This document shows positions 1-32,031 of a stretch of 64,000 nucleotides of DNA, piece by piece. The DNA is taken from NCBI RefSeq assembly GCF_052425735.1, contig NC_135765.1, positions 31,310,001 to 31,374,000 on the forward strand, in the 5' to 3' direction. Position 1 is the first letter of the stretch; the number at the start of each line of letters is the position of its first letter. The position numbers and the translations under genes were made by a program. The stretch comes from Oculina patagonica (lineage: Eukaryota). Under the pieces are notes generated by a model that saw only the letters and a list, made by a program, of their open reading frames with translations, ran no database searches and was not told where the DNA came from.

Positions 1-3000
1 TGTTACCAAGCTAATGGAAGAGGACCAGTGTACACAGTGCACAAAAGGTTACTATTGCCATAAGTCGGGTATCACACAGCCAACTGAGGAGTGTCATGCA
101 GGGTATTACTGCATTGAAGGTGCAAGTGTACCAACTCCCAATGATACTGTGACAGGAGCCCCTTGTCCATCAGGTTCGTTCTGCATCAGAGGGTCTCATA
201 AACCGGAACCTTGTCCTGTTGGCACATTTGGACCAAGTCAGAGACTGCAAAGCCGTTCAGGCTGTGTTGATTGTGAGGGAGGGAAGTACTGTAATTATGA
301 GGGATTAGCTGCTCCAAATGGTACCTGTGATCCTGGGTATTTCTGCACAATCCGAGCTGTCAGACCCAACCCTGTCAACGTATCTCAAGGTGGAGGAGTC
401 TGTCCAACGGGACACTACTGCCCTAGGGAAACAACCACTCCATTCAAGTGTCCGCCTGGCACATTTAACAACAAGACGCTTGCAACAGAGCCTTCAGACT
501 GCACTCCATGTACACCAGGGCAGTACTGTGAGGGCTATGCTAACACTTACCCTGATGGACCATGTGACGAAGGCTGGTTCTGTGAAAAAGCAGCATACTC
601 AAAGAGGCCTGTTCCAACAGTGAACACAACCTTCAACAACTCTCTTGACTTCACATGTCCCCTGTACTCAGTGAACTTTACTGGAGGTATTTGCCCTCTT
701 GGTCACTTTTGCCCAGAAGGCTCTTCTGCACCGAAACAATGTCTCAAAGGCAGGTATTGTGGTCAGGTGGGGCTTGCCAGTCCAGAAGGAAACTGTACTG
801 CTGGCTACTATTGCAGTGGCGGTAACATTATTTCAAATCCTAAAAACTGTACTGCAGGGTATTATTGTCCACAAGGAACAGAAATCGAAGTTCCCTGTCC
901 TGTGGGAACATACTCCCCATATGCAGGAAAATCAAAAGAACAAGACTGTTTGGACTGTAAAGCCGGGTTCTACTGTCCACTGCCTGGTGCAACAGAGGTG
1001 TTGTTTGAATGCTTGCAAGGCTATTACTGTCCGAGTGGATCCGAGCACAATGCCACTGTGATTTGTCCACGAGGAAGTAGTTGTCCAACTGGAAGTGGCC
1101 AGCCTGAGAACTGTGTCCCTGGGAAATATCAAGACCAAGAAGGACAATTCCAGTGTAATATTTGTCCAGCGGGGTCTTACTGTGATCCCTCCACAAATCT
1201 TACTGGTGTTATCCATCCAACTAAGTGCACAGCTGGAAATTACTGTCCCAGTGGAACAAAGACTGAAAAGCAATTTCCCTGTCCTGCTGGTACATACAGC
1301 AATGATACAGGCCTAGAAAGATCTTCAGATTGCAAGCTTTGTCCGCCTAAGTTGTTCTGTGGCTCCCCTGGCTTGATCAAACCTTCTGGACCTTGTGCAG
1401 CAGGTTTGTGATAACTTTGTTTTATTGAGAGGAAAGTATTTGCCTATGGGTCATAACCCATGTTCTATCACATTTCACTTCAGAGTCACCATGTGGTAGT
1501 TTACACTAGAATGCATTTAAAACAAGCTTGTACCCTATGGAGAATTTAAATCATGCTTTGTTGTTGGATATATACCTGATTGAAGAAACGTTGACCCATG
1601 AAAAGCTCAAACCAGAACGATAAGACGATGAGATATGGGAGACAGCATTGTTAAGCTTAGTAATATCCCATTTATTTATAATCAAGGCAATGTCTTTGAG
1701 AGTTTAGGAGCATGATTTATGCAACCTGTGTATGTAATTTCATTCTGTCATAGATGACGATTACTTTTCCGATTTCCCACATTTGGGTCGCATCCTTTAT
1801 CGTTTAGGCTCACGGTCACGTCTTCAATCAGGTATATGTAAAAATGATTTACAATAAGACGTAACAGCAAATGTTTGAAGTGGAAAGGGAAATTTATTAA
1901 ATTTGCATTGCATTATACTCTACCTTTGCGTAGATTATAATTAGTTGTGTTAATTTTTTATAGGTCACTACTGCGTGCTGAATGCTTCCACGTCAACACC
2001 AACTGATGGAGTGACAGGCAATGCATGCGAATTGGGCGAATATTGCCCAGAGGGGTCATCAGAAGGAATTGGATGTCCAGCTGGTAAGAATATCATTATC
2101 ATCCTCATTATCATTATTATAATCATTTTATACTAGTAATACGTGACTCGCAGGGCCTCGCGAAGCTCTGGGTTGTGGAGGGGGGGGGGGGTGTTATAAA
2201 TAAGGAGTGGATTATTTGAAGTTGAACATTAATTGAATTGTGATAACCGGTTTTAACCGGTGATTTGTTATTGTTGCCTAGTAACGGGCATGGCCGCAAC
2301 ACCCTCGTTCCCAGGGTCTACTCCGCTTTGAAGATGGCGGCTCTTTCTGGTTCGTAAAGAGGTATAAAGCGTTGGGAAGCTCAGGCTATTTTCAAAATCA
2401 TCCATAAATTATTGGATAGCCGCATTTTGGACTTTTATTTGAGGGCATTAAAAAAAAACCTAGCCGGATTCAAACCCCCGCCCTCAGTCCCGAAAATCTG
2501 ATTTCAAGTTCGACGCCTCACACCATTAGGCCACCAGCGCGCAGCCGTGTGACGTCATTTCCGCCACACACCAAGCTCACAGATATATATGACCGTAAAC
2601 TCCACACAAGATTTCATCCCGCCTGAGCCCTTTGAGGGACAAAATTATACACCCTGCTACGCTCGGCCTTCGGCCTTGCTTCGCGAGGAATAATGGAATA
2701 ATGTTTTGATTTTGTGTAAAGCATTAAATACGGTTAACTCTCTGAGTGCCTCTCTCCACACTAGTAGCATCCAGGGGGAGTAGAAATAGTCCTAGCCACT
2801 TGATGCTACAAAAGCCAGGATAAGCTTCGGCCTGAAGGGCCACTAGGCCCAAATGCAGACTTTACCAATTAAATTGTTGAAAACATTAACGTGGATAAGC
2901 AGGACATTTTAAGGAAACGTTTACAGTGCTTAAACAATTGGCATTTCGATCTTTCTTCCACAGGGACGTTTTACAACCGAACTGGGCTACAGAATGAGAC

Positions 3001-6000
3001 AGGATGCTTGCCCTGTTCAGCAGGCTACTACTGTGATGGAACAGGAAACATAGTTCCCAGCAAGAAGTGCCATGAGGGATTCTGGTGCAGGGGTGGCTCT
3101 TCAGAAGAACAGCCGCTGAATCAACCATATGGCACAGAGTGCCCAAATGGTAGTTACTGCCCCAGAGGCACCCCATCCCCAGTGCTGTGCCCTAAGGGAA
3201 CATATCAGCCAAGACAGCGCAACACTAGAGTCGAAGACTGCGTAGATTGTGATCCTGGAAAGTTCTGTAGTGAAACAGGCCTTAGTGCTGTGAGCGGTGA
3301 TTGCAAGGCAGGATACTTCTGCAAGAATAAGGCAGACAAGAGCAATCCAGAGGATGGGGTAACAGGCGATATTTGTCCTGTAGGCAGCTTCTGTGTTGAA
3401 GGCTCTATACAGCCGCATACATGCTACAATGGAACGTACATGAATCATACAGGTAACTCTTGCTGTTTGATGTGGCTCACAACAGTCTTAAACGTGAAAC
3501 TCCTTGTTGAGCTAGCATTACAAGTCTTCTTGCTGATTGTCCGTTTTGTTTTTGTTTTATATATTAGGCCTGGTTCACACTAGCGACATATCGACATAAC
3601 GGCAAGGCCTCACAAATGCTAAAAACACCTCACGTTGATGTTTTATGTCACCAGTGTGAACAACATGACATAACGTCATAGTTGGAACATAATGACATAA
3701 GCATAACGAAATAAGGAAAGAACTGAACTTTTCTTTATGTCATTATGTCCATGTCGTTATGTTGTTAGTGTGAACCAGGCCTTATTCAAATTGTCAAATT
3801 TAATTTTAATTTCATGGATTTGATGACAAGTTTAAACAGTGCTTTCTTGTTACAAATGCCCGTTATACACACCTTCCTTTTTGCCAGCATATATTGATGT
3901 AATGAAAAATTCAGGTACAAGATCATTCTGGGATATTTCAATTTACTAGAACCTTTTCCTTCCTTAAGGGTGTATTGATTTGCCTCGTTTAAATTATTAA
4001 GTGTGACCATTCCAAAGGAAGCTATTAAGCAGTATATTGTGTTTCTGTTGCTCTATGTTCACTCCTAATCAAGTTTTACTTTGTGTTCTAGGTGCTTCTT
4101 CCTGCTACGTCTGTCCTGCGGGATACCAGTGTATCAGAGCTGTCTTACCTGACCCATGCCCTGCAGGATTCTACTGTCCTGAAGGAACTGGATACGATAC
4201 ACAACCCTGTCCTGTTGGTACTATTGGTAACAGAACAGGTTTGGCCAATGAGAGTGAGTGTACGCAGTGTCCTGGTGGTTCATTCTGCGAGACGGCTGGT
4301 CGTAACACTGTCACTGGGCAATGTCAAGGAGGTAGGTCGAGATTATTGCCCAATAATTTTGAGCAGCGTTAGTAAGATGACTTGCACCATAGTTAATAGA
4401 GAGAAATTGTTATGAAGCCCGGCAAAGTTCTTTGTTGACCTATTTTGGGAGCTGACGGTCCCAAAACCTGACAAAATGCAATAGGTGGTTTGGTTTCTTC
4501 ATACAACTAACCAGTAAATAGTGTAAGGGTTTAAAACAAAAGATCTGCCCGGTCATGGACCTTCCAACTTAAATCTTGACGTCTTTTTTTGCTCCTTTGA
4601 TGTTTGCCGGGCTTCCTAACTATTTCCTCTATTAACTATGCTTGGTAGGTAGGTAGGCAGGTAGGCAATCTTTATTTCCACACGATTTAAACATCAGCTT
4701 TTTTAAAAATACTATATACAATCCTAAATCTCTGCCCTAAAGACAAGCACTGATGTGATAAAATAGAAGGGAGTTGTCAATTTACTTTTTGTAAGAATTG
4801 CATCGCTTTATTTGTACTGATAAATAGGATGATGTGAAAAGTTTAACTTATGCTTGTAAATGCTATTATCTTTTAAGGTTTCTACTGTACATCAGGTGTG
4901 AACGTCAGTGCTCCTGATCAGCATTTCACTGGCGCTGGAGGAAAGTGCCCTGTAGGTCATGAGTGCCCAGAAGGTAGCAGTACGTTCCATCCATGTGACC
5001 CTGGATATTATGCAGCTGTGGAAGGAATGTCAGCTTGTGATGTGTGTCCTGCAGGTCTGTAAACTACCATCTTACTTACGTAATCCTCTTTGTTTCTAGT
5101 GGAACATAGGTCCTCAACTAGTGCTGCCACCTGACCCTGTTTAATGCAGTACATTTTGCCTCATTCCATGTAAGGTGTTTCTCGTCCAGCTCTGCCATTC
5201 TCATTCATCACGAGTTGTGCTGAGGTCTCCATCTCTTTTGCTTCCCCTGTTTTTTCCACTCTAGTACCCTCTTGGCTACATGTCCAACTGGTCCCCTCAG
5301 CACGTGGCCAATCCAACCCCAAGTTCTTTGCCTCATCTCTTCCGCTATCGGTTGCTACCATGAACTATCATTATTATCATCATTGTACCAGTCATCGTTT
5401 ACATTTTATATTTCAAATTTCAGATTTATCTCATTTCTAGTTATGCTGATTTTTGTGATTCATGATAGCTTACCATAACCCGATCCAACTTTGATTTTTA
5501 GGCAAATACTGCAATGGTACCACAGTCACCCCAGCATCCTGCCCCAAAGGACATTTCTGTCCAAATGGCACAGAATTTGCCACTCAGCATCCATGCAGAC
5601 CAGGGACTTACAACAATGTCACAGACCAAACTTCAGAGTTTGCATGCAAGCTATGTGATCCAGGGAAGTACTGTGAGGGCTATGCACGTGTGTGGCCTAA
5701 TGACTACTGTGATGAAGGTTTCTTCTGCTCCGGTGGATCGTGGTCCAAGCGTCCAGGAGACATTGGTGTCGCCAATTATGATAATGCAACAAGCCCTGCT
5801 GACAGCTGTTACACAGTGTTCGAGTGTGTGTGCCCAGCATGGAACAAAACTACAGGTAGAAACTACAGGTTGAAAGCTAAAGACATAAGACTTTGTCAGC
5901 TTGTGATGTGTTTCCTGCAGGTCTTAATACTTAACACGCGACCCCACAAGCTATGTAGTTTTTTATCCCATCGTGTATAAATAAAGGTTTTGTTGTTGTT

Positions 6001-9000
6001 GTTGTTGTTGTAGAACAAAAACTTACACTGGTTGTAGAGATGGCAACTGTAGAAGCATATTAAGACGGAATCCATTGAGAAATCGAGTTATTTAAATTGT
6101 AGCTGGACAAAAAGCGAGTACCAGAATAATTTAAATCCTATTGCGTTATTTTCTAACATTTTTGAAAGCTAAAGACATAAGTAATTATCCGTGGTAACAC
6201 CAACAACAATTTTTATATCACAGCCTGAAAAAAGTTAATTTCAAAGTTCTTAAAAACCATGTAAACTAAAAGTAAAATCTTACGAATAGCTGCTTTGTAA
6301 AATCACCTATTAAGCGACTAAGTGAAATTCAGTGGAACTCCAAAATTTGTTTTCCATGTTTGGTGTTGTTAGAAACGATTTCTTTTGACAAGATATTTGA
6401 AACAGTAACACAGAAGTTTTCAATAAGATGTATATAATTTCCGTATATAATTCTGTCCAATTAATACTCAACGTCCTGGTAAAATCCGTCTTAAACACTT
6501 ATATCATTTTTGTTGCAGGTGACATTTGTCCAGCTGGCTACTATTGTCCCAGGGGTTCGTCTCGTCCAAGGCCTTGTAAACTTGGTCAGTACTGTCCTCG
6601 TGCGGCATTAGCTGAACCTGTTGGAAATTGTACTGCTGGATATTACTGTAATGACAGTTCAACTGTGCCTGATCAGTTTGATTGTCCAATTGGCCATTAT
6701 TGCCCAACAGGAACGGGAATTCCGGTCGCTTGCCCTGAAGGGAAATTCTCTAACACGCCAAGGAACACAGAACATGCAAACTGTGGAGACTGTACAGCTG
6801 GCTGGTACTGCGCTGGTACAGGAAATTTTGCACCAACAGACAAATGTGCTGCTAATTTTTACTGCCCCGGTGGCCAAAGCACTGCAACACCAGGAGAATA
6901 CCTGTGTACTCCAGGTCACTTCTGCAAAGTTGGAACAGCACAACCAGTCAGATGTGAAAATGGTACCTTCCAAAATGAGCCTGGCAAAAGTTCTTGCAAG
7001 ACATGTCCAGATGGTTATTACTGTGACGCTACCAATGCAGCTGTTGTTAATGCAACGTTGTGTCCTCGTGGTTATTATTGCCCAGCAGGCACTGGAAACT
7101 ATCGTGACTTCCCTTGCCCAGAACGTAAGTACTTTCTTATTCTTACATGAAGAGAGGACATCGTGGAAGGTCTATGATCCATTTCAGCTTAACAGTGATC
7201 AATCAGCATGTCTCATCTCATCAAAATGTTTCATAGCGTTCGTGTGAATACAAAACTGAAGGGGAGCGTACCTTTAAGCGATACTTCAAATTTCTTCCAC
7301 CTAGTATGATACGAAATGCAGACATCAGGCTGTAGATATTGTTGTTTAAAATGGAAAGCTACGCTTATTCAGGCTTCTAATCAGTTTGGGTATGCTCTGT
7401 GCTCGAAAGCTGTCATCTAACCCCTGCTTTCATAACCAGTATTTATTTTTTTAGATCTCTTATCAAAATGGGACACAGCAGATGAGAAAAGTTAATACTA
7501 GTAGTAAATAAAAAATTAATTTATAGAGCATCCTACGTGTAACCTTAAAAGGGGTTGACCAGGTGATTTTTTGCATTGGCATGTCCGAGAATTGAGACTG
7601 TCATCCTTGAACTCCAGCTGGTGGTCAGAGTGAAGTAGATGTCAAGTCATATACCCTGACGACACTGTCTCTACACATTCACATTTCATCTATTTATTAA
7701 CTGGGTTTTTATTCAACCCTTGACAACCAATTAGCAGTTAAATATAAGGTGCGACCCTTCAGCTACTTTCTCTTAAATTCCAGGTACTTACAATGACAGA
7801 TTAGGTTTGATGGCCATTGGAAACTGCACAGATTGTCCACGAGGAAAGTTCTGTGGAAGGGAGGGCTTGACTCAGCCATCTGGCGACTGTTACGGTGGCC
7901 ATTACTGCACAGAGCGATCAAAGTCTCAAGCGCCAGTGAATGACCTTCTAGCCACCAACTACCCAGACCATGTGGACTTTCCATTCCCTTTCTTGAATGA
8001 TGACTGCCCTCCTGGACATTTCTGCCCTAATGGGTCTGATCCTGAACCGTGTCCAGCTGGGACCTTCCATAACGATGGTGGCATTTCCAACAAGACGCAG
8101 TGTAACCCATGTCCTGTAGGAAGGTACTGCAATGGATCTGGTATATTAAGCGGCCCAGCTCCACCATGTGATGCTGGATATGTGTGCACTGGAGGGTCGA
8201 GTGAGCCAAAGCCTACTCATCCATCCATGGGGTACATCTGTCCTCGTGGCTTCCACTGCCCTGCTGGTAAGATGATAATAATATGTTTAAAAGATTTAGC
8301 CGAGCCTAAAAGCAAAGCTTCCCAGTTATTTACGTCGCCTTTATTTAAATCTGAATCTATTGACCATAGAGAGAAAAAATGTGACTTGGGCCCGCGATTC
8401 AATGAAAAATCATTACCTTGTCAGCGGTCAACTTCAGAAAACATGTGACCTCGATGAGCTTTGCAAACCATGCTGCTAGCCATGATGTCCATGAAAAAAA
8501 CAAATGCAGGATTCTCCTAGTTCTATGGCTATGGGGCTCTGCTCTGCAACCCTTCGGGCCGCTTGGGAGCTCTGCTACAACAGTAAAGACTTTATTTGTG
8601 GAGTTAAGGGCGTTTTTTGTAAAATGATACTGTTAGATCTTAAAACTGTCAGTATGTGCCCTGTGTATTGTAGTGTTGGCAATTTAGCCACCACCATCTA
8701 TCAGGTTATTGGCCACAAATCTACGACTATGTTTCCTTTGAAAGGCCCTGTTTTGTTTTCAAAATTGCTGTTTAGTGAATAAGGAGAAAACATATTAAGT
8801 GCCTGTTTGACTGTATTATTTTTGGCATCCTGATCAACATAACAACAGTGTACATAGTGAAAAATTACTAAATCCTTATCTTTATGTAATTAGGTACCAA
8901 TATAGAACTAAGCTGCCTGCCTGGCACTTATCAGCCTAATCTGGGACAAGGAGAGTGTATCCCGTGTGGTGCTGGGAACATGTGTCCATACCAGAACATG

Positions 9001-12000: not shown

Positions 12001-13569
12001 TTGGGCCCACTCTCTGTGGGGCAGGACGTCGCCGTGAAACCCCTGGGGCTGGGAGTAGAGAGGAATGTGGTCTATGTCCTGGCGGTTTCTATTGTCCTAA
12101 TGATACCATCAATGTCCAGGGAATACCATGTGATGCCAGGTATTATTGTCCAGTGGGTTCGTCAGTGCAGAAGCTTTGCCCAGGAGGAGCATATTGCCCT
12201 GGTACAACAGCCACACCCATACCCTGCCCAGGTATGTGCTTATTGCTTTGTCGCAATTCGTATATTGGCCATTTCTCAGTGAGTTGTTCAAGGAACTGGG
12301 CGTTCTTTAAATATTTAACCAATCAATAAACTGACACTACTACATGGAAGAGGAAGATCATGGTGAAACTGGCCATTTGACCAAGATTGATCAATGCTTT
12401 TCGATTGAACAGAGACCAAATTATGGGATATCTTTTGAGCCGAAACGTTTGTCAAATTATGGACCTTGCAACATGGTTCAAAATCCAGACAAGTGTCTCT
12501 TATTTTGAGATTTTGATTTCTGTGATACTCTTAAAAAATGAGCAAACATAGTGTTTTTTTATCTCAGCTTCTTCCAGATGGTAGGTCCATGCAGGATTTT
12601 ATAGTTATCACAAAACTGGTAAAAAAGCATTTAAGGGTTGATATGGTTTTGGGGGACACTGTCTCAAAAATAGATACATTTGTATGGATTTTGCACTAAA
12701 TTTCAAGGTGCATAACTTGGTCTGTGTTCAACATAAAATCATCAAACTTGGTCAAATGACCAATCTCGACGTGATCTTTCGATTAGTTAAAGTTTGAAAC
12801 TCGCCCCAGTTCCCTTTGCAACTCCAAAATGGCCAATCAAGATGCTGTCCACCTTTTTGAACAAATTTACGCAGGGCCCCTGTTGATACCAGCCAAGTGC
12901 TGATTGGGCCACCCTGCCTTGCCTTGACTTGTGTACATAACAGTTTACAGTTCCTATTGTATTTGTTTTCAGGTGGTTCCTACTGTCCAAATGGATCATT
13001 GACGCACATTCCATGTCAGTACCCAAATTACTGTCCACCAAACAGCACTCAAGAACTAAAATGCAATCTCGGCTACCAGGCTTTAAATAGATCAGGAAAG
13101 CGAGACTATCACGAGAATGCAGTGTCAGATTTGTCCTGGAGGGACATATGGTAATGACCCTGGGCGTCTGGTATGTAAAACCTGTCCAGCAGGTTTCTTC
13201 TGCCCCAAAGGTACTAAAGGACCCTTTGACAATCTGTGCCCAGAAGGCGCCTATTGTCCTGAGGGGTCTGCAGTAGTACAACCCTGTGCTCCTGGTTCCT
13301 ATGGTAACCGTTCCCAAGCAACAGCACCTTCCGATTGTTACCCGTGCCCGCCAAAATCCTTCAACAATTTAGAGTATCAAACAGCTTGTCGTCCATGTGG
13401 AAGCAGCTCATTTTCAGAAGAAGGCCAAGCAGTGTGCACATGTTTTGGCAAGAACCGGTATTTCCAGGTGTCAGATGGTTCATGTGATTGCCTATCTGGA
13501 TATGTGTTTTATGGGACAGCAGATAAAAAGCAGGAAGATGGCAATAGTGACTTGGATTGCCAGCCTGAG
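1..13569 (+). CDS. Ectodomain exons 1-13 of the giant gene: tandem CPxGxYCPxG / CxxCxxGxYC cysteine repeats (GCC2/GCC3-like)
   Basis: Dozens of CP(A/K)G(Y/F/H)(Y/F)CPxG(S/T) units and many N-x-S/T sequons in ORFs 14..1411, 2891..3583, 6428..7150, 7807..8448, 10894..11388, 11775..12329 and 13117..13575; mostly phase-1 introns. Confidence 0.9.
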
Positions 13570-22500: not shown

Positions 22501-22564
22501 CTGTTGTTGTTGTAACGTTGTTGTTGGTACTTTTGTTGTTGTTGTATTTGTTGTTGGTTTTTTT

Positions 22565-22633
<69 letters not shown>

Positions 22634-25600
22634 TTGTTGCTGGAACTGTTATTGTTGTTGTTGGAACTGTTGTTGTTGTTTGTTACATCAACGTCTGCTT
22701 TAAATTTACGCTTTTTGCCGCCGTCATGAGTGACGTGAATTTCCTCTTGTGTTTTCTGCTGAAGGTTACAAAAGACAACTTAGACGCGGTTCTTCAACAG
22801 CAGATTATGGATCAGTTCAGGAAAGATAACGAGGCGCTGCTTGGACACCTTGAGCAACGAAAACAAAAATCTCTGGAGGACACAAAGGTAACAAAAAATC
22901 ATTTTTTTCAACAGTGCTGACAAATCGGTGAAAACTAAAATGGAGTCTTCTTTTGTACACAAGTTCTTGTATACACGCACTTAAAGGTGAAGTAAACTTT
23001 GCCAAATTTAAAGGAGAGGGGGGGGGTTTTTTTTTTGTTTTTTTGGGGTTTTTGAAAAAAAAAATGTTTTTTTTTTCTTCGTACAGGCGAAGCTTGCAGC
23101 CCGTCGTGCTCGTCGTCAAGAGGAGGCGCGCCGTCAGGCAGAGGAGGCTGCTGCTCAGCGGATCCTTGAAGAGCAGAGCCAGGCCATCGCGGCCAACAAA
23201 CCAGTCGACGCAGATCACGTGGTTGTACCTGAAGTCATTTTACCACGTGAAACGTCAGAAGAACAGGTTCGAAAAAAATAGTAGTTCACGTTTGATAACT
23301 ATTCAGACTACTTGGTTTTCTAAAAGCTGTGATAAAACTTAGTTTATAAAACCTGTAGCAGTCTTCATGAAGTTGTCATTTTGCAAAATGCTTTTGAAGA
23401 ATTTGCTACATTACAATTACTGGCATTCTCGTCACCATAGCCCTTTTCGTTTCTCTTAGCCGGCGGGGCCTGTGCACCAGTAAGGGCTTGAATTAATTCG
23501 ATAACAAAACTTGAACGAAAGTCAAATATGTCACGATTCTCCCACACACTATATTGAAACAACACGATTGCAGACTTGAAGACCGGAAGTCCAAGAATTT
23601 GGGACCTGAATCATTTGTCTCCAGAACCCTTCGTTTCTTATACCAAGGCCCTGCCGACTTATAGAAGCAAAGAGGGATATGGGGACGAGAATGAATCACT
23701 GGAAGTTAAGTTAAAGTTCGATCACGTGGGCAGATCAGGGTAGCAAACTGAAGCATCATTTAATTTCCAAACCATTGCTGCTTTCAGTATATTAAGATAT
23801 TTTTTTCTACCTACAGGCTTTACGAAACGAACAGGAACGAACATTAGCCGACATGCGCGAGAGGCACGAGCAAGATGCTCACAAAATAAACGAGAAACTC
23901 GAGCGAGAAGTGGCGACAGAGGAGGCTCAGGCGGTGGAACTGCTTGAAGCTGAGAAAGAACGAAGACTAAGAGAGCTGAAGGACAGACAAGCCGCGGAAT
24001 TAGCCGCTCGATCGAAAGACATGTCGCCTGAAGAAGTGCAACAGGTATTGAGAGAAGAGGGGCCTGAAAGAGTGAAATGCGAACTGGGATTTGGGCAAAT
24101 GTTCACTGGGAAAATGAGATTTGGGTCACTGGGACTGGGAATCACAAACAAAAAACAATGCAACTGGGAATGGGATTTAGGCAAAATTTGGGGTGGGAAA
24201 TGGGATTTATACCCCCCCCCCCCCCCCCCCCCCTTCAGAACCTCGAAGAACACTGCCTTTTTCAATGAGCAACAAAGTCTTGGAATTAAATAGGGACCTT
24301 TTTGGACTTTTCCCTTTACGTAGTGTTGTGGAAGACAATACCTAGACAACTTCTAGTCTGTATAAATATTTCCTCACGAATTCGCTTAGAGTTTATCGAG
24401 CCTACAAAGTCGATTTCCACGTAAGCGTGCAATGACATAGAATAGAGGATTAAAGGGACTATTTCACGGACTTAGCCAGATTTTTGAACAGCCAAAATTT
24501 ATATTTGTGTCGCAGGAAACCTACAAATATTATTACTATATTAGTAGAAACTCGGCGTGCATTGGAAATCCGCGAATCTGATTCTCTCCCACTGATTTCT
24601 ATTCGCCGATAGAAAACAGTCGCGCGCCGCGAGCTCAAGCGGTAATCTTGATTTGTCCAAAGTGCACAACATTGTAGGTTTTGGACTAAATCCTTAGAGT
24701 TTCACAAACAATTAGACTACTCGCTATTTGCTCATAGAAAACTCGGGCTTGTAGTCTAATTGTTAATTAGAGCACGGAAACTGTCAACGAGCATCCTTGG
24801 CCGCGGATGGCTCGGATAGAAATGGATTGGAACTTTTTCTAGTTGTTTCTGTGCATCATCATAAAATCAATATTTATAGCCGTAGGTTGATTTCTATCCG
24901 CAAATTGAGGTTATATTTTCCTTCAGATGTTCAAAGAAAATGTTTTTTATGGATTAAGTTGCCTACCACTAATTTCAGAACAGTTTAGACCAAAAATCCG
25001 CGAAATCCCCGTGTTGTAGCTCCTTTAAAGGCTTGCAGTTGTGCTATGCGTATTCAGTCAGCATCTTGGGGAAATATTATTGACAGCGTTTGTCCCGTTT
25101 TATTTTGTCTTCAGCTTTTGGCAGCCCATCAACAAGAACTTGAGGAAATCATGGAAAAGATGGATGTAGAGAAGCAACGTCAGCAAGCCAGTTTACACCA
25201 GAAGTTACTAGAAAGAAAGAAACGAAGGCAAGAGGCGCAACAACGTAAACAAGAACGAGAGATGGCGAAAGAACTATTAGAACAGAAGAAAGAACTTGCT
25301 GAAGTGCGCACACAACACGTGAGTAACATAACGATTGTTAATGAACGCGTGAAAACATTTCTCTACAATTTCTAAACTGATCATAATTTGAAGTTTTTCC
25401 TCATCTCTCATGGTAGGTATGGTATTGTAGCAGTTGAAAGGCTTTCTCACGGATTTTACCAGATTTGTGAACAACCCTTACTTATGTTTGTGTCGAAGGA
25501 AACCTTAAAATAATGGTCCATTTTTATTAAAAATTGCTATATTAGACCTCTGAAACTATTAACGAGCGTCTTAGGCTGCGGATGGAACGGATGGAAATGG

Positions 25601-28600
25601 ATTGCAACTTGATAATGGGTTAAGTTGCCTACCACTTCTTTCAAAACAGTTTAGACCAAAAATCTGCGAAATCCCCATGACGTAGCTACTTCAATTTACT
25701 TAGGACCCTCTAGGGTAGCGTGCCTTGACTGACCGGGAAACGCAATGTTTGAGTTACACTTCAAGTACAAACTTTCATCCTTTACGAAAGAATTGAAGTC
25801 AAACGAGTAGAAAGTATATATCTATATATTGTTATTTTGTTGACAGGTAAAGGAAGCCGAGAAGCAAGCAATGATTGAAGGTATTCGGGAAAATGGATCT
25901 GAAGCGGCAGAGTTTGTTATTCGAAAGGTAATAAATACACTCTATTCTTTCATTTGCGTTTTAGTGATACCCACAAATTAACTTTCGTTTCGTCTTCTAG
26001 AGTAAGGTTAGGGAAACACAGCGTGTCATTAGTATTTCTCCGTTTTATACAGTGGAAGCCCGCTCTACGGACACCTGCATGCTTAATACGGACAGTTTCG
26101 TTGGTCCCAACGAAAAGCTCATATATAACCCACTTATTACGGACACCCGTTAATACAGACAACAGACACTTAGTTTCATCGTCAACCCCGCTTTACGGAC
26201 AATTTTCATTGTCAAAGTAAAGTTACGAACGTTGTCGAGTTTTAAGAACAGTAAGGTAATTTTAGAAAGTAATATAACTATTACTGGCAAGGCCATCCTG
26301 ATACATTTGAGTTATTGCTTTGCACATTAAATTGACAGTTAATTCTGCGTTATTTGATAGGATCAGTGACCACAATAAAATGTTTTATTTTTTGGCCTCA
26401 GGTTCTCGAAAAACGACACAGCCAAGAGCTGAAAGACTTAGAGCGCATGTTCCAAGAAGAACGTAAAGTGGCAGTCGACGAAGCACTGGCTAAGATGGAG
26501 GAGCGACACGCTCAGGAAAGCGATGAATTGCGTGCTCAGAATGAAAAAGAGTTAAAAGAACTTGAGAAGCAACAGCTGAGTCCTGAAGAGCTACAGCAGA
26601 GACGAGCACAGTTATTAAATCAACAACAATTACGGCAGAGCGCGCTTGACAAAAAACACGCTGATCAGCGGAAACAGATCCAACATGGCGTGCAGTCTGA
26701 CTGGGAAGTACGCTTTGCACGCGCCAAGTTGGAACTCAAGGAGAAACATTATCAGGTTTGTTGCGGTTCTTTGATTATTAGAATTTCTTTTTCTCCATTC
26801 TTAGGTGTTAGTTCAGTAGCCTGCGTAGTTGGCGGTATGTTGGGGTAAACGCACGCGCGAGCAAGTGGCGAGGCCGCGAGAGACCTAGGAAGGTGGAAGC
26901 AAAAAGCCTTTCGCTTTTTCCCCCCTAGGCCCCTCGCAGCTTCGCCGCTTGTTCGTGTGTGTGTGCGTTAACCCCAACAAAACCGCCAGCTATGTGGGCT
27001 ATTAGTTCAGGTACAGCCGTAGTGAAGTAATTTTAGGTTGAAGGTTAAATTTGACAATAAAAGTTGACAGTTACTTGTGACAAATTACATAGTTCGGGCC
27101 TGTCTGCCGCAGCATTTCGTCCCTGCCAAGGGACTCTCTAGAGACCTGTCTGTTTAGCAAACTCGTCGAGCATCGCGCTCAAAGTCCCGTTCGCAAGCAA
27201 AATAATGACAGCAATCTCGCCTTATATCGCACAAGAATTCCCGACAGCACAAAATCCCGAGTTAAAATTGACAATAGAAGTTGACAGTTACTTGTAACAA
27301 AATACATAATTCGTGGCTAGTCTTTTTGGCAGTTACTGAATGGGGTGTTTCAAGTTTAGCTGTAGTCTTGAAACAATTTTTACACACGTCCACATTTAAC
27401 TCCTTCATTCTCCTCCTCCCCTTACCCTCCCCCAGGAATATGCAGATGCCTTGAATGAGCTGACCCCAGAGCAGGCAGAGGAACACAGGAAATCAGTCGA
27501 AAAGGCAATGGCAGCTGCGAGGGAACTGGAAATAGTCAAGCAGAAGTTAGATGAACAGCGGGCGGAGAACGAACAGAAGCTCAAACAAGAAAATGAAGGT
27601 TTGTTGGTTTCACCAATTCCCCCGCAACCACTGCACATAGCCAAAGCATAAACGACGACAATATTTATTTAACGTGAGGGTAAAAAGAACCTGAAACGGT
27701 GCAACAAGAACGAACCACAATACATCTAATTTAAAGGGGATTTGTCGCCGATTTTAAGAGATATTGGAAAAGCCAAAATTTACATTTGTAGAAAACCTAA
27801 AAATAACGGCCCATTTTTATTAGCAATTGCTTTATAAGAGCACTGAAACTGTTAACAAGCGTCTTTGGATGCAGGTGGCTCGGATGGAAATGGATTGAAA
27901 CTTGAGAATGGCGTCACTTTTCAAGTTTTTTCCGCGCGTCTTCAAAAAATCAATATTTACAGCCGAAGTTTGATTTCTATCCACAAATTGAGGTTATATC
28001 TTCCTTTAGACGTTCAAAGATAATGTTTTTACATGGGTTAAGTTGCCTACTACTTTTTCAGAGGCCGGCGACGTGACGAGCTCCAAGATCACGTATAAAG
28101 TCTTAAAATTTTAGAAGTGTCTTATAACACAGACAGTAGCAATGTTACTTAAAATAGGTAGCTTTAAAACTGTTCTTACGCATGTGTTCTTTTTCTCTGC
28201 AGCATTTGAAGCTGAACAACAACAAAAGTTGGAAGAGGAACTAAAGGCGTTTGACAAACAACTGGAACTAGAGGCAGAGGAAGAACAGAAAAAGAACGAG
28301 AAAGCAATCTTGGCTTTGAACGCTCGCAAAGAAACTCTGCTAAAAGAAAAGAAAGCTAAAGTCAAACAGGAAATGGACAAAATGAGCAAACAAGGGGCTT
28401 CTAAAGAAGATCAAGAAGCCATCTTAAAAGAGCACAGCAAAGACTTGGCTAAACTCATGAACAAGATGGATGCTGACAGAATGAGAATGCAGAGTTCACT
28501 AGAAGAGCGTTTGAAGAAGAGACGCGAGGCAAAACGGCAGGCCAAAGTGGAAGAGCTGACAAATCAAAATGAAGAAGAGAAAAGAGAGTTTGAAGAAAAG

Positions 28601-31600
28601 GTTCAATCGGAGCGCGACCGAGTTCAAGCCGAAGAGGTAATTGCTTTGAAAGAGAGCATCCACGTGGATAACCTCGTGTCGGCGACGATCGAATCCGAAG
28701 CTGCCCCTCCACCTGTACCCCAAGCCCGACTGATGCCGGACAGTTATCGATTAGCAGCGCCATTAAGCGAGGGTGAATTGGCGTCGTTGCTACTATCGTC
28801 ACCGCTGTACCAGAAGATCGAAGGCATCAAATCTTTGTTGAGTGGTGGCGCTGGCAAGGGAGGACAGTTCAGTGCCCCAGGTAAGGGTTGTGATTGGTGC
28901 TGGCTGTAGAACCCGTATGAAAATGTGGATCGCATAAATTAATAGGGATACGTGTGTGACGACAAATAAACCATTTGTATAACCATGCCATGCAAATGAA
29001 ACAGCCCTACATGGCTGCCACTTTACGGGTAATAGGCTGTGCGCATGTGTACAGGTGTTAGTCAAACCGCGGAGATGTATTCTGTGACGATTGCTGTTAA
29101 ATGGTTTAATTACTAAATCCGTTCATACACCTTATTTGAAAATGGCGGAAACTACATTCTTTTGTTTTCATGTTAATTATCCTCCGTTGCCTCGATCGCA
29201 TCTGCAGAATTCAAAAGAATCTTTGGCTTAAAACGAGGCAACGAAGGTCAATTAACATGTAGACAAAAGTAAAATGTATTCTCCGTCTCTTTGAAATAAG
29301 GTGTATGGGGGATGGTAGATTAGGAGATTTGAAGTAGTTGTTAAAACATCAACGTGGATACTTTTAGTAAGTCAAGATTTCGTATGAGCAATTTTACACA
29401 CAATGAAGAGCTGTTTACCGCTTTTTTATTATAAAATGTAAATTTGAGCAAGTGTCTTATTTAGTCATTTGAGGTGTCTAATAATTCATCCTTCTTTTGT
29501 CCCAGCACCTGGTGAAGGTTATATTGACATCAAGGATGACACGCTGTGGGGAGGGGACGATGAACTCGTCCCAGTTGACCTCAACACGCTGCCTGCGCGA
29601 GCGTTCGTCACATACAAGTTTGGTTCCTTCATTGTCGACTTACTATCCGTCCATTGTCATCATCTTCCAGTCACGCTGTTACTCGCCGATAAACTGCCAC
29701 CTAACGCACACCTACAGAGGAACGCTTATCGCAACTCCTTCTTCTACGACGCTAGCAACCGCATTTTGTACATACGCGCCGAGCGAATGGACAACGTTGG
29801 CGAGTTTGTTTTGGTTCTCGTTCACTGCCTGTCACACATCGCTTGTGGAGACTTGCGTGACGACTCACATCCGGGCTTCATGAAAGAGTTCCATCACGCC
29901 CTGGCTGTGATGTGTGACGACTTGTTCTTCGCGCGTTACAGGCGTTCTTCTGCGCTTGCGCGTACGCTGTCGTCACTTCCGGCTAATGATGATTTAGAGA
30001 GCGCCAGTCGAGTTTTATTGGAGTCTGTGTTTGGTGATGCTCACACAGAGGCGGACAAGTCAAACGTAGTTGAAGGACTCTTAGACGCCAAGCTTTTACG
30101 CGGCGCCAACAAAGATGGCGTGCATTTTACACACGAAGGCATCGTGGAGCGCTTGTCCAAGTACAGCAACTTTGCCGTGGAGTCGAAGCTTCGATCTTTC
30201 TTGGGTGACGTGGACGAAAAGGCTTCCCATGCTCGACTTCAAGGCACGGAAGAGTTTATTGATCAACGACTTGTTGAACTGCAAGGACCACAGGCTAAGG
30301 ACAGACCAGTGTCACGCTACGCTCAGTCACGCGGTAATATGATGTCGCGTGGTGTGTCACGGCAGATATCCCGTGCCCAGGCTTTGTCACGCACTGCCAC
30401 TAGTTTGCCTATCTCTGGAAAAGCCACTGGCAAACCTAAGGAAGACGAAGACCTTTACAAGACGTTCTTGCAGGTATGTTCATGTGATTTGGTTGAGTGT
30501 GTTATTGACAAAGGTAAACTAGCCCTCTAGAGTTGGCGATTCTGCAGTGGAATTGCCCCATTACGTATGCTAACTGTAAGACTTTATCAACAGAAGAGAG
30601 CGTTTGTTGCTTTTTTAATTGGAAAATAACTAACCATCAAAAAAGCATTCAACAAAAGGATTTGTTTCCTTCACGACGTTGTTCTTACTGGTGTTAAATG
30701 ATATTGGGTTACTCGACCAATCAAAAAGATAACAACTGTATTTGCAATGGTAGAAAACAAGAAATATGTGTAAATATTAAAGGGACCGTGTCACGGATTT
30801 TAGCCAAAATTAAGGCATAGGAAATGACCATCAAATTTGTTTAAATGTATAAAATAACCTCTTAAAACAGTGAAGGAATATTTAAATAACACACCAAATG
30901 CAAAAGAAGGTACGGATGGTCAAAAGTGTCGAAGATTGAAACGGATTGCAATGTGGGCTTTTGAAATATGGTCCGGCAGAACAGTTTTCAAAGATAATAT
31001 TGTCTGCTTGTAACTTTAATTTATGATGCCCGGGAGTCACATTTAGCTGCAAGGAAGCTATGCTTTTGTCATTTAGTATCAAAGAATTAATTTCTTTGCA
31101 AACATTTAGTTTCATAGCGAATATTTGGCAAAATTTAATAACATAAGATTAACTTAGCCGTGACATAGTCCCTTTAATAATTAATACGGAATCCGTCAGA
31201 ACATCTAGTATTAATTGGACAAAATTATGTGTTACTGTTTCAAATATCTTATCAAAAGAAATCATTTCTTACAACACCAAAAATCGAAAACAAATTTCGA
31301 AGTTCCGCTGTTAAAATACGATTTTAGTTTACATGGTTCTTGTGAACTTTGAAATTCATTTTCTCTGGCTCTGATAAGAAATTGTTGTTGGTATTAACAC
31401 GGATAATTACTTACATCTTTAGCTTTTAAAAATGGTTGCAATTAACGCGATACGATTTAAATTATACTGGTTCTCATTTTTTTTTTTTTTTTCAACTAAA
31501 ATATTACTCGTTTTCCTGATGGATTCCGTCTCAAAACTTTCATCGAGAGGCAAAGTTACAGGTCTTCAGTGGTATAATGCATAAATGTAATAATTGGTTT

Positions 31601-32031
31601 AACGATTTCTGTTTTAGGTTCAAGTGGACGACATGCAAGATACTGTTGACAGTTTGAATCAAGAATTCGCTCAGCTTTCCAGACAATCTTTGGACGTCAC
31701 AACAAACCTACGAGAACTAGAACAAGAACTGCTGGCTCAAACGGACCTCTTCAGGGAGTCAGCGGAGGGCAGCACGGAACATGCGCAGCACAAGAATGCC
31801 GTCCGACAAACCACCACCAAAATTACGACCGCAAAGGCTTCGCTGGAATCCATAAACTTACAGAAGAGCAACTGTTTAGAACGACTGAACTTGTTCAAGA
31901 AAAGGCTTGAAGAAAAACAAGCACAACTAGAACAGCATGTCAGCAAGCCGGAAGGCGAAAGGAAACAACAAGCAGAGAGAAAACTTCAATCTGCCATGGG
32001 AAAAACACAGAAGAAGAAACCAAAGAAGTGA
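1..32031 (+). CDS. Giant GCC2/GCC3 (ephrin-receptor-like) cysteine-repeat single-pass transmembrane protein with coiled-coil cytoplasmic tail; 5' end lies outside the window
   Basis: Hand-spliced GT-AG exons with consistent phases: <1-1403, 1964-2083, 2964-3452, 4092-4331, 4878-5054, 5502-5855, 6519-7124, 7784-8266, 8894-9141, 9876-10272, 10901-11368, 11788-12231, 12973-13569 (one extra nt), 14324-15169, 15738-15924, 16571-16866, 17367-17517, 18148-18422, 19939-20175, 20774-20971, 21454-21657, 21817-21993, 22765-22887, 23087-23266, 23817-24044, 25115-25318, 25847-25927, 26402-26755, 27436-27598, 28203-28880, 29506-30473, 31618-32031 (TGA). About 3,995 codons in total. Confidence 0.85.
2730..2866 (+). 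mobile_element. SINE 3' body fragment
   Basis: GTGCCTCTCTCCAC...CATCCAGGGGGAGTAGAAATA.TCCTAG...GCAGACTTTACC resembles a cnidarian SINE core as recalled. Confidence 0.5.
3567..3781. mobile_element. PIF/Harbinger-like MITE
   Basis: TIR GGCCTGGTTCACACTA with TTA target duplication on both sides. Confidence 0.8.
4388..4640. mobile_element. CATAG-ended MITE (related copy at about 13646-13935)
   Basis: About 38-bp imperfect TIR CATAGTTAATAGAG...GAAGCCCGGCAAA. Confidence 0.7.
5070..5365 (-). mobile_element. 3' fragment of an RTE-like LINE
   Basis: Minus strand encodes WIGHVLR...KRVLEW..GKQKR.RP, then ...LVEDLCSTRNKED and a TAAG-repeat tail. Confidence 0.6.
14324..15924 (+). CDS. Juxtamembrane and transmembrane exons of the giant gene (polybasic furin-type site, beta-rich domain, single TM helix)
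   Basis: Exon 14324-15169 contains QSARRRRRAVD. Exon 15738-15924 encodes WAVIWGMTVFMLVCIIMLVIAVIIW followed by basic RPRSIGR (positive-inside rule). Confidence 0.85.
15196..15346. repeat. About 150-bp foldback palindrome (MITE-like)
   Basis: AATTCAGCTT.ATAACGAGGCCTAGAGGACACAAACAAAAG followed by its reverse complement. Confidence 0.75.
16571..32031 (+). CDS. Cytoplasmic exons of the giant gene: long E/K/Q/R-rich coiled coil, globular zincin-like domain (exon 29506-30473) and terminal coiled coil
   Basis: Heptad-rich ORFs 19960..20184, 21463..21675, 23853..24293, 25046..25375, 26354..26848, 28142..28909 and 31624..32031 splice in frame; ORF 29469..30530 has globular composition. Confidence 0.85.
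16893..17281. mobile_element. TTAA-flanked non-autonomous DNA transposon (Kolobok-like)
   Basis: TTAA|AGGGGCTTTGTCACGG...CCGTGACATAGCTTCT|TTAA; homologous copies at 24454-25024, about 25438-25692, about 27735-28060 and about 22043-22145, with a related TIR pair at about 30781-31173. Confidence 0.75.
17555..18045 (+). mobile_element. Penelope-like GIY-YIG endonuclease relic, split by a MITE and preceded by an inverted copy of part of itself
   Basis: Joins across the MITE as VYHFNCDLCEADY|IGYSCRHLHQRIEEHRGSAIGRHIKEQHG...KKCQNKLECLIF; 17555-17595 is the reverse complement of about 17981-18021. Confidence 0.7.
17656..17878. mobile_element. MITE with TACCTTATTAxAGGAAATTAACGCTT terminal inverted repeats (TA at both ends)
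   Basis: The two ends are reverse complements; inserted inside the GIY-YIG relic. Confidence 0.75.
18625..18926. mobile_element. CCCGGG-ended MITE with 9-bp TSD
   Basis: TIR CCCGGGGGGACTCCCATATCAAA; TSD GGTGCTATT on both sides. Confidence 0.8.
21700..21812 (+). repeat. ~21-bp tandem minisatellite filling a short intron
   Basis: Units like CTTCTTACCTTGTCACGCAACT repeated 4-5 times up to the acceptor at 21816. Confidence 0.7.
22145..22686. repeat. Compound (GTT)n microsatellite with GGAACT/GTACT interruptions and a ~65-nt poly-T
   Basis: Directly visible; it generates the low-complexity L/C/V/F ORFs. Confidence 0.95.
23424..23693. mobile_element. Foldback MITE CATTCTCGTC...GACGAGAATG
   Basis: Long imperfect TIRs; 9-bp TSD AATTACTGG/AATCACTGG (1 mismatch). 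Confidence 0.7.
24454..25024. mobile_element. Second TTAA-flanked Kolobok-like copy, with a nested element at about 24541-24767
   Basis: Same TIRs and internal sequence as 16893-17281; the nested insert is homologous to about 60888-61152. Confidence 0.7.
26817..27001. mobile_element. TAGCC...GGCTA foldback MITE
   Basis: Near-complete hairpin; 9-bp TSD TTAGTTCAG. Confidence 0.78.

Follow-up and report, generated by a model that had tools for sequence, protein, structure and literature searches.

What sort of protein is encoded where a long series of cysteine-repeat exons gives way, on the same strand, to exons for a charged helix? The question is raised by the first half of a 64,000-nucleotide (nt) stretch of the genome of the coral Oculina patagonica (NC_135765.1, positions 31,310,001 to 31,374,000; G000:C8:31310001-31374000), which we call the window and which is eukaryotic DNA of about 40% G+C with no runs of N. 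On its plus strand, to which all coordinates below refer, two types of open frame stand in series: frames with about 10% Cys and CPxGxYC-type repeats up to about 13.6 kilobases (kb) and, from about 16.5 kb, Cys-free frames rich in E/K/R/Q, with a unique 282-codon exon and a small exon carrying one hydrophobic helix between them. The original prediction, made from the letters of the window, joined both types into a single polypeptide of at least 4,000 amino acids (aa) with a GCC2/GCC3 ectodomain, a furin site, one transmembrane (TM) helix and a tail of about 1,650 aa. As set out below, we regard it as nearly certain that one gene encodes a giant type I protein here; that gene begins well upstream of the window, and the part of its product that is conserved from protists to birds is a core on both sides of the membrane.

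Continuity of the gene across the membrane exon

The gene was rebuilt between positions 2 and 32031 with a script that chains exons by codon usage and splice sites, after which the chain was corrected by transcript and orthologue evidence. The resulting model comprises 32 exons, with AG at 31 of 31 acceptors, GT at 31 of 31 donors and compatible phases at every junction, and it reproduces both the exon count and the numbering first proposed, the TM exon being exon 15. It encodes 3,996 aa within the window, comprising a 2,298-aa ectodomain, a 25-residue TM helix and a 1,672-aa tail, and ends with a TGA stop codon at 32029-32031; the frame is otherwise open apart from one break in exon 13. The three features foreseen on this chain, an RRRRR site, one TM helix and a long tail, are all present. 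Checked by hand, exon 14 ends at 15169 in phase 0, the TM exon (15738-15924) passes from phase 0 to phase 1, and exon 16, starting at 16571, supplies the two bases that complete the phase-1 codon.

The interval 13000-18900 was compared with sequencing runs, and four runs from four studies, filed under three species labels, provided assembled contigs 97.7-99.7% identical to the window. Since these contigs lack five consecutive introns, they derive from complementary DNA (cDNA). All four runs contain the GT..AG joints 13569|14324, 15169|15738, 15924|16571, 16866|17367 and 17517|18148. A single 2,753-nt contig of run X12 links the Cys repeats of exon 13 with exon 18 by way of the TM exon, and a single 3,823-nt contig of run X8 begins in exon 14 and runs beyond exon 18. 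The run contigs give no sign of a stop or start at the TM exon; additional internal promoters may exist. The outcome set beforehand as contrary to a single polypeptide was a pair of genes split around 15738; the spliced contigs instead cross exons 13 to 18.

Orthologues extend this continuity in both directions. Protein P0155 (2,397 aa), the translation of a 9.2-kb contig assembled from a public sequencing run, was found by a search with the C-terminal domain; in tblastn it is collinear exon by exon with 11203-32001, and its 90%-identity cluster includes Acropora proteins. Acropora digitifera XP_015772855.1 (P0171) is collinear with exons 1-6, 8-10 and 12-17, the Acropora cervicornis model KAK2566603.1 holds ectodomain, TM helix and full tail within one model, and the transcript-derived proteins P0155, P0177 and P0178 extend from the ectodomain to the C-terminus. 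The idea that the join is an artefact of frame reading, with a Cys-repeat protein ending at about 15.2-15.9 kb and a separate coiled-coil gene following it, can draw on the NCBI annotation of A. digitifera, in which the orthologue appears as two models, XP_015772855.1 of 7,254 aa and the 'trichohyalin-like' XP_015772856.1 of 822 aa. That split, however, comes after exon 17 and not at the TM exon, and besides the spliced contigs and the three ectodomain-to-C-terminus products, more than ten homologues share the same layout, among them a single Trinity transcript as well as P0098, P0128, P0144 and P0147, which were called on single contigs of 14-30 kb. Two genes are therefore a highly improbable reading of the locus, and the prediction of one polypeptide through a single TM exon is borne out by the four runs, by P0155 and by these homologues.

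The gene does not start in the window. Examination of 80 kb of upstream sequence placed about 51 more exons in the 54 kb before position 1 (G000:C8:31255812-31310000, or -54188 to 0 in window coordinates; loci L002-L007), with Cys-rich exons persisting to about -53.6 kb. A 91-nt exon at -54188..-54098 encodes what is, by eye, a typical candidate signal peptide (MWILK...LVLLSYA), has a GTAAGA donor and joins in frame to give an uninterrupted chain of 5,142 aa up to window position 1403. With the gene start about 54 kb upstream, the whole protein would measure about 8,670 aa; the whole gene would thus comprise about 86 kb and about 83 exons, of which window positions 1-32031 make up the 3' 37%. 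A. digitifera XP_015772855.1 agrees with this size, its 7,254 aa extending no further than the counterpart of exon 17. The figure of at least 4,000 aa proposed for the protein is a large underestimate; the original prediction overlooked the gene's upstream half, as well as the break in exon 13. The N-terminal part of the gene is made up of tandemly duplicated, near-identical exons of 294-297 nt with one repeat unit each (e.g. at -40926, -37131 and -35898). The introns separating these exons are filled by a satellite with a unit of 86 nt, of which up to 28 copies occur at 90% identity (L005:3221-3778 and L005:4475-7363, about -36.8 to -32.6 kb).

The break in exon 13 consists of one extra base, relative to transcripts, at 13118-13120. 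The three RNA assemblies that cover the spot omit it, X12 at 13118 and X1 and X8 at 13120; in tblastn the alignment of P0155 changes frame between 13118 and 13120 without losing a residue, and the Acropora orthologue also marks the extra base. In the model protein this position is written X. Taken literally, the window's frame ends at aa 1869, which would fit a broken allele or a pseudogene, and in X5, which of all runs is nearest to the window at about 99.5% identity, a contig break falls at about 13089-13122. Against such a reading, the change is a lone 1-nt difference in an otherwise intact frame of 8,670 codons with canonical splice sites throughout, the three RNA assemblies read through in frame, and an error of assembly or haplotype is at least as likely. 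We consider it unlikely that the copy is broken.

Repeats, topology and the conserved core

The 2,298 ectodomain residues in the window contain 64 G-x-[YFWH]-C motifs and 225 Cys. Against Pfam PF07699 (Ephrin_rec_like, GCC2/GCC3) the window's repeats score 22.7, 20.6 and 16.1 bits, below the gathering score of 23.1, and three further exons in the window give no Pfam match to PF07699. Upstream exons pass it with 38.0 bits (L005:2846-3166) and 25.8 bits (L002:727-2016), and homologues carry precomputed PF07699 matches. The designation of a GCC2/GCC3 ectodomain thus holds for the gene as a whole and fails on the threshold within the window, where the repeats are best read as a diverged CPxGxYC variant of the same family. 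Cys makes up 9.8% of residues before the TM helix versus 0.36% after it, and N-x-S/T sequons number 61 outside versus 2 inside. The 25-residue helix itself, which has the form W...W, is translated from 15759-15833 (about aa 2299) and is followed by a basic flank, RPRS...R...R..RPKYK; in each homologue a single hydrophobic segment occupies the corresponding position in the order of parts. From the candidate signal peptide and the asymmetry of sequons and Cys we infer a type I, single-pass topology with one TM helix and a positive-inside flank.

To delimit the family, the C-terminal domain was compared, without a profile, with 1.8 billion representatives, among which 568 proteins matched. Many of these have 3,800-7,500 aa, with about 10-12% Cys over thousands of residues, one hydrophobic segment, a stretch rich in E/K/R/Q and the C-terminal domain; P0038 (Fabomonas), P0040 and P0020 (Chromosphaera), P0008, P0151-P0154, P0159 and others share this layout. 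Among protists, members come from Diphylleia rotans, from Chromosphaera perkinsii, with two proteins, and from Fabomonas tropica, whose 7,499-aa product includes a signal peptide and is encoded by a single Trinity transcript. Invertebrate members outside the cnidarians come from crinoids, sea urchin, starfish, two hemichordates, amphioxus, annelid, molluscs and brachiopod, and vertebrate members from lungfish, frogs, turtles, crocodilians, birds and squamates; the vertebrate forms are short, with 1,200-2,400 aa and the TM helix near residue 130-360. Judged by these matches, the family spans ancyromonads, CRuMs, ichthyosporeans, cnidarians, other invertebrates, amphibians, reptiles and birds. 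None of the matches listed is from arthropods, nematodes, fungi, plants or mammals, which is no proof of absence, and a further homologue search added nothing to the family. A search of AlphaFold Swiss-Prot found no reviewed eukaryotic relative, human and mouse included. Three unnamed AlphaFold DB cluster entries (A0A7J8H1H5, A0A3Q7QV33 and A0A6J0WJF6) match the C-terminal domain at E of about 1e-13; the form of these accessions suggests mammals, and the family may survive in some of them.

BLAST of window segments and two alignments agree on what is retained across this range: the module encoded by exon 14, the TM helix, a cytoplasmic motif next to the membrane and the C-terminal domain, and not the repeats, whose stalk varies in length from 0 to about 7,000 aa among lineages. 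We hold this description of the family and its core with high confidence. Homologues are named 'uncharacterized' or 'hypothetical' throughout, save for automatic misnomers: 'Golgin subfamily A member 4' in A. cervicornis, 'trichohyalin-like' in A. digitifera, and several turtle and bird models fused with the neighbouring NFKBIZ (annotation records were compared for orthologues P0171, P0170 and P0169, and for P0187, P0189, P0197 and P0202). Literature searches by domain words and by accession and locus names found no paper on the family. Neither in the window nor in three homologues does Pfam recognise the juxtamembrane module, the part of the tail next to the TM helix, the rod or the C-terminal domain. 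Gene models for orthologues thus exist, split or misnamed, and the core is described by no family, domain or paper that we found.

On the extracellular side, exon 14 (14324-15169; RNA joints on both sides) encodes a module of about 280 aa composed of a Cys-rich subdomain and a cupredoxin-like sandwich. An alignment of 35 homologues (A2) contains eight invariant residues, C167, P191, Y193, D206, F210, L213, G235 and C260, with the signature HYPxY...FDYGxF...GxYVF, and the AlphaFold2 (AF2) model computed from it has a predicted local distance difference test (pLDDT) value of 90.5 and a predicted TM-score (pTM) of 0.88. Structure comparison with VIA-align gives cupredoxins as best matches, at scores between Z 6.9 and 5.3 (plastocyanin Z 6.9 over 91 aa at 2.7 A, pseudoazurin Z 6.7), and the ephrin-A1 ectodomain follows at Z 4.0-4.3; an Atlas search agrees with the cupredoxin list. 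Foldseek against the PDB found no match at E <= 0.001 for this model or for the C-terminal one. Cupredoxins (plastocyanin, pseudoazurin, amicyanin) and ephrin ectodomains would share with the last 150 or so residues before the membrane a Greek-key beta-sandwich. Unlike in cupredoxins, the conserved pattern of the copper site is absent, there being no conserved His or Met among the invariant A2 columns that could correspond to the type-1 ligands His/Cys/His/Met, and the coral domain has an inserted, disordered basic loop.

This loop carries the polybasic, furin-type motif RRRRR, read from the sequence at 14747-14761 (aa 2151-2155, 148 aa before the TM helix). In the model, RRRRR corresponds to residues 142-146, with pLDDT below 50 at the flanking residues 139-142 and 148-153; blocks of ten residues over 131-160 average 68, 50 and 61, and 139-153 is the region of lowest confidence. 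The motif is thus predicted to lie in the module's only disordered loop. It satisfies R-x-[K/R]-R in the lumenal or extracellular part of the chain and reads RRRRRR in Acropora. A basic motif (RRRLL, RRRRR, RRRR or RKRR) occupies the same A2 column in most of the 35 sequences, Fabomonas and Chromosphaera included, with RRRLL in echinoderms, hemichordates, annelid, mollusc and Fabomonas and RRRRR or RRKRR in cnidarians. The cupredoxin alignments start at about model residue 104-108, which places at least one strand and a helix N-terminal of the basic loop.

On the cytoplasmic side, the membrane-proximal motif FELENF...KLKGML (16648-16800) is 59% identical to Fabomonas P0038 over 54 aa. The rod that follows (tail residues ~236 to ~1135, 900 aa) consists of 48% E/K/R/Q, with 2.3% Pro+Gly and 22% hydrophobic residues. 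Its crude heptad score is moderate and its many i/i+4 pairs of opposite charge also fit ER/K single helices, which crude scores do not separate from coiled coils; the rod could be in part a charged single alpha-helix rather than a coiled coil. The motif L-x-x-[KRQ]-L-x-x-[KR]-[KR]-x-x-[KR] occurs in it four times, versus 0.055 expected after shuffling; animal homologues have two to four copies, and Fabomonas and Chromosphaera one or two. Sites of this LxxKLxxRRxxK type lie, at approximate positions, in exons 19, 21, 24, 26 and 30 (e.g. ~20100-20175, 21570-21657 and 23087-23140, and further ~25200-25290 and 28560-28640).

The C-terminal globular domain is encoded by exon 31 (29506-30473), with its zincin-like core at about 29565-29942, and is supported by the 568 homologues, an AF2 model and fold matches. 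In an alignment of 38 sequences (A1) G98, H106, H110 and D119 are invariant, within the motif VGEFxLVLVHxLAHIKxGDxxDD. The coral element H106-x3-H110...D119 (HCLSH...D) lies at 29823-29864 and has no Glu after the first His. All 38 sequences, from protists to vertebrates, contain H-[CTASV]-L-[AST]-H, with Glu missing from both the HExxH and the HxxEH position, and the invariant D119 stands nine residues after H110. The AF2 model from A1 has a core (residues ~10-140) with pLDDT above 90, followed by floppy helices. Among 48,161 PDB chains compared by VIA-align, the first 18 rows are all zincin-type or related metallohydrolases or proteins with an aminopeptidase-like domain (Z 9.0-5.1): Wss1 leads (5xbn, Z 9.0 over 107 aa at 3.0 A, a middling score; a second Wss1 at 8.0), and there follow YbeY-type proteins (Z 7.8, 6.6 and 6.5), the minigluzincins abylysin (7.3), selecase (7.0) and jannalysin (range 7.3-6.8) and SPRTN (6.8), besides catalytic domains of M1 aminopeptidases and their relatives, BepA, lugdulysin and an M. 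tuberculosis regulator. The weak Foldseek list is similar (selecase, Wss1, IrrE, BlaR1, ZMPSTE24), as is that from Atlas (SprT-like, WLM, YgjP, M48), and both invariant His lie on the helix equivalent to the zincin active-site helix. A profile search of PDB sequences with the alignment of this domain returned coiled-coil noise only, and a feature-based search of the ESM Atlas gave hypothetical phage proteins, to which we give no interpretation.

The C-terminal domain is accordingly modelled as a zincin fold without the catalytic Glu. Since Glu is absent family-wide and was not just lost in this lineage, a pseudo-protease or an atypical metal site would be the ancestral state. With Wss1, SprT-like proteins (SPRTN) and minigluzincins the coral domain would share the fold, i.e., a helix, a three-stranded sheet, the His-x3-His helix and a following helix; it differs from them in that none of the 38 aligned sequences has the Glu of HExxH, that an invariant Asp stands at the putative position of the third ligand, that sequence similarity is undetectable and that the domain forms part of a membrane protein. 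The same contig carries another copy of the domain at G000:C8:31529741-31530121 (L011), about 190 kb downstream of the C-terminal-domain exon and about 156 kb past the window end. It is 52% identical over residues 2-130, has a second matching piece and is probably part of a paralogous gene of the same family.

Exons, introns and repeats within the window

Exon 1 of the window, which is about exon 52 of the gene, encodes Cys-rich CPxGxYC repeats at 2-1403 in an open frame with a GT donor. It is 72% identical to aa 4240-4717 of A. digitifera P0171 and extends upstream to -1560; spliced straight to exon 2 (1964-2083), it restores the motif GPCAAGHYC. Exons 2 to 10 are all bounded by AG and GT. 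Exon 2 encodes a Cys-rich repeat that is 71% identical to P0171, and Cys-rich repeats continue, with identities to the same protein in brackets, in exon 3 (2964-3452; 69%), exon 4 (4092-4331; 84%), exon 5 (4878-5054; 87%), exon 6 (5502-5855; 88%), exon 8 (7784-8266; 70%), exon 9 (8894-9141; 67%) and exon 10 (9876-10272; 70%). Exon 7 (6519-7124), also of Cys-rich repeats, is the least supported: it is placed by the codon-usage chain and by phase only, it has no match of at least 60% in P0171, and its PF07699 match is the weak one of 20.6 bits. Two more exons of Cys-rich repeats have fitted junctions, exon 11 (10901-11368), the 3' part of which is 80% identical to aa 4-59 of P0155, and exon 12 (11788-12231), which is 81% identical to P0155. 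The last Cys-rich repeats, with the frame break, are in exon 13 (12973-13569), over which RNA contigs are continuous from 13000 to 13567 before the joint to exon 14.

Downstream of the TM exon, for which four runs provide the joints on either side, the first cytoplasmic exon is exon 16 (16571-16866), with RNA joints on both sides and 86% identity to P0155. Exon 17 (17367-17517) likewise has RNA joints on both sides, and exon 18 (18148-18422) has the joint 17517|18148 and is 66% identical to P0155. The charged helical rod begins in exon 19 (19939-20175), which is placed by collinearity with P0155 and fitted junctions, as are exons 20 (20774-20971), 21 (21454-21657), 22 (21817-21993), 23 (22765-22887), 25 (23817-24044), 26 (25115-25318), 27 (25847-25927), 28 (26402-26755) and 29 (27436-27598). 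For exon 24 (23087-23266) the acceptor at 23087 restores AKLAARRARRQE, which is found in P0155. The end of the rod and a linker are encoded by exon 30 (28203-28880; 87% identical to P0155, fitted junctions), and exon 32 (31618-32031; 86% identical to P0155) encodes the last helical segment with the basic end KKKPKK and the TGA. Candidate poly(A) signals, from a pattern scan only, are ATTAAA at 32560 and AATAAA at 32714 (32560-32719).

Several small exons proposed by the first script (1484-1495, 1754-1831, 12568-12580, 12875-13014, 13651-13666, 23441-23479 and 26812-26892) are contradicted by RNA joints or orthologue alignment, and the same holds for its split of exon 16 at 16641/16723.

Some introns contain features of their own. 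Intron 14 holds, at 15193-15349, an inverted repeat with 69-nt arms that are 88% complementary and a 19-nt loop; it resembles a miniature transposon and has a high depth of RNA contigs. The stretches 13591-13984, 16743-17333, 17531-17924 and 18516-18712, noted as intronic, are covered at 10-100 times the contig depth of exons in all four runs; many of these contigs continue into unlike sequence, as expected of dispersed repeats that are expressed or present elsewhere in the genome. In intron 17 an open frame at 17862-18050 (YIGYS...RIEEH...H) recalls, and may be, the remnant of a GIY-YIG endonuclease of a mobile element. Intron 22 is of low complexity at 22070-22730 (GTT/CTG-type repeats and a long T run), with spurious long open frames in all three plus-strand frames.

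Mechanism, alternatives and meaning

The layout that these elements would form, read from the outside in, starts with the signal peptide and about 6,700 aa of disulfide-rich GCC2/GCC3-type repeats making up a long glycosylated stalk, followed by the membrane-proximal module of about 280 aa that ends in the cupredoxin-like sandwich, by one TM helix and the cytoplasmic motif, and then by the charged alpha-helical rod of about 900 aa, the Glu-less zincin-fold domain and a short, helical, basic C-terminus. The parts from the membrane-proximal module to the zincin-fold domain, rod included, form the invariant core. In the mechanism that we propose, which would make the protein a receptor for adhesion or force coupling, the conserved polybasic loop would be cut by a furin- or kexin-type convertase in the secretory pathway and, with the sandwich's first strand upstream of the cut, the two chains would remain non-covalently joined. 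The stalk would bind matrix or another surface, and a pull or the binding of a ligand would then be transmitted to the membrane-bound chain or release it, while the rod would reach about 100 nm into the cytoplasm and hold there the Glu-less zincin module, which would serve as a metal-dependent docking or peptide-binding module and not as a protease. The position of the polybasic motif, in the only disordered loop and with the first strand upstream, fits such a force-sensitive, cleaved-but-held design. The explanation as a whole, a giant type I glycoprotein with this layout for which such a mechanism is the most likely one, has, in our estimate, somewhat better than even prospects, and the specific mechanism of processing plus coupling is put forward tentatively, at less than even. 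What the data show is the structure of the gene, the continuity of its transcripts, the layout, the conservation and the predicted folds. That a convertase processes the protein, that its halves hold together non-covalently and that the zincin domain docks rather than catalyses is proposed from the layout and the models; mechanical or adhesive coupling, and any ciliary link, are speculative.

Several points weigh against this explanation. In most phyla the loop motif is RRRLL, which is tribasic and not a strict R-x-K/R-R furin consensus, and in several vertebrate short forms the polybasic motif is weak or absent. The best cupredoxin score of Z 6.9 is below the value of about 8 at which the tool regards a match as clearly above background, in a range for which it warns of a possible common arrangement, and the middling zincin score of Z 9.0 lies within the range of the same warning; the fold assignments come from VIA-align and from the agreement among the match lists, and the relative packing of the model parts comes from AF2 only. 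At the level of the gene, the borders of the upstream exons are mostly those of a simple exon-chaining script, partly checked against orthologues, and are less certain; the RNA status of the sequencing runs is the tool's guess, deduced here from the missing introns; and, given the frame break in exon 13, the window's copy could be defective.

The same features may be put together differently. The protein could be a passive structural one, i.e., a giant anchor of glycocalyx or matrix in which the rod and the zincin-like domain only form a tie to the cortex, with neither cleavage nor force signalling. The huge repeat stalk and its variation between 0 and about 7,000 aa from one lineage to the next would suit this role, as would the heavy potential for N-glycosylation, the absence of the catalytic Glu and the failure of Pfam to find a kinase, GTPase or other signalling domain in the tail. 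What makes us doubt it, and rate it at about one chance in four, is the conservation over more than 1 billion years of short features, namely the polybasic loop, the HxxxH...D element and the cytoplasmic motif (59% identical between coral and Fabomonas), which argues for specific molecular interactions beyond anchoring; moreover, the vertebrate forms retain the core with almost no stalk. A protein of ciliary or flagellar membranes, for instance a tether or sensor on sperm or sensory cilia, is a less probable candidate; a ciliary tether had been suggested in the original prediction, beside a surface tether and a mechanosensor. All lineages found so far possess flagellated or ciliated cells, and giant GCC2/GCC3-type proteins are known on protist surfaces; yet known ciliary families yield no match, those rows of the fold search that lead to axonemal proteins span a single long helix only (Z about 5), and the lack of a reviewed human or mouse relative in AlphaFold Swiss-Prot would be unusual for a core ciliary protein.

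It is likewise improbable that the C-terminal domain is an active, atypical metallohydrolase, be it a protease or a YbeY-type nuclease, with access to substrate governed by the ectodomain. Two invariant His and one invariant Asp on a zincin fold are compatible with an enzyme, and YbeY-type enzymes, which are among the structural matches (1oz9, 1xm5 and 7y7o; Z 6.5-7.8), also lack a Glu after the first His. In the 38 sequences, however, an acidic residue is found at neither the HExxH nor the HxxEH position, the third His of YbeY is not conserved, and there is no sequence-level match to solved enzymes or Pfam families. At the other extreme, one may read the family as an ancient, pre-animal receptor class, possibly from near the eukaryote root, in which convertase cleavage within the cupredoxin-like juxtamembrane domain arms a force or ligand switch, with the Glu-less cytoplasmic zincin, carried on the long charged helix, as its output; we consider this a bold reading, and a rather unlikely one. 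A giant type I glycoprotein, proposed to be processed by a convertase and to couple its stalk to a docking module, remains our best explanation overall.

Compared with known systems, the proposed design recalls Notch, in which furin cleaves at S1 within the heterodimerisation domain (HD) of the negative regulatory region. Like Notch, the coral protein would be of type I, with a long array of small disulfide-rich repeats and a polybasic site in an exposed membrane-proximal loop, and its cleaved halves could stay non-covalently paired in a design suited to force sensing. Unlike Notch, it has no EGF, LNR or ankyrin repeats, its juxtamembrane fold is cupredoxin-like and not the alpha/beta fold of HD, there is no sequence homology, and the tail consists of a charged rod of about 900 aa and a zincin-like domain. 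SEA mucins, and GAIN proteins such as adhesion G-protein-coupled receptors and polycystin-1, resemble the proposed design in having a giant glycosylated ectodomain that is cut within a folded juxtamembrane domain, one strand of the N-terminal fragment staying in the sheet of the C-terminal fragment. Their cleavage, however, is autocatalytic (GSVVV or HL/T), whereas the coral motif is a basic cluster of convertase type, and the folds and membrane parts differ, the coral protein having one TM helix. Usherin, ADGRV1 and other giant ciliary link proteins are alike in size class, in a filament built from repeats and in a single TM, but differ in their laminin-EGF/FN3 or Calx-beta repeats and their short tails with PDZ motifs, and no homology with the coral protein was found.

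The GCC2/GCC3 surface proteins of protists and animals, for example apicomplexan CRMPs, Babesia BboGDP, SVEP1, SCUBE and ELAPOR, contain the same small Cys-rich repeat as the coral protein, but none has the core of cupredoxin-like domain, TM helix, rod and Glu-less zincin, and the CRMPs are multi-pass. Giant surface proteins built of repeats, with a single pass and a cleavage site next to the membrane, are a known kind; a combination of domains like this one is not known. The literature on GCC2/GCC3 proteins includes PMC9843837 and PMC9815656.

The analysis defines the domain logic of a very large and widely conserved membrane protein family whose members are uncharacterized or misnamed, and it assigns the part conserved from ancyromonads to birds to the core rather than to the eye-catching cysteine repeats. 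It also corrects gene models, in that the coral protein has about 8,700 aa and the RefSeq models of A. digitifera split it. If the cleaved-and-held design is real, the family would add a further independent case of the principle realised in Notch, SEA and GAIN proteins. Should the bolder reading as an ancient receptor class also be true, the family would embody a mechanism of signalling or adhesion without a described counterpart, kept in most marine invertebrates, sauropsids and amphibians.

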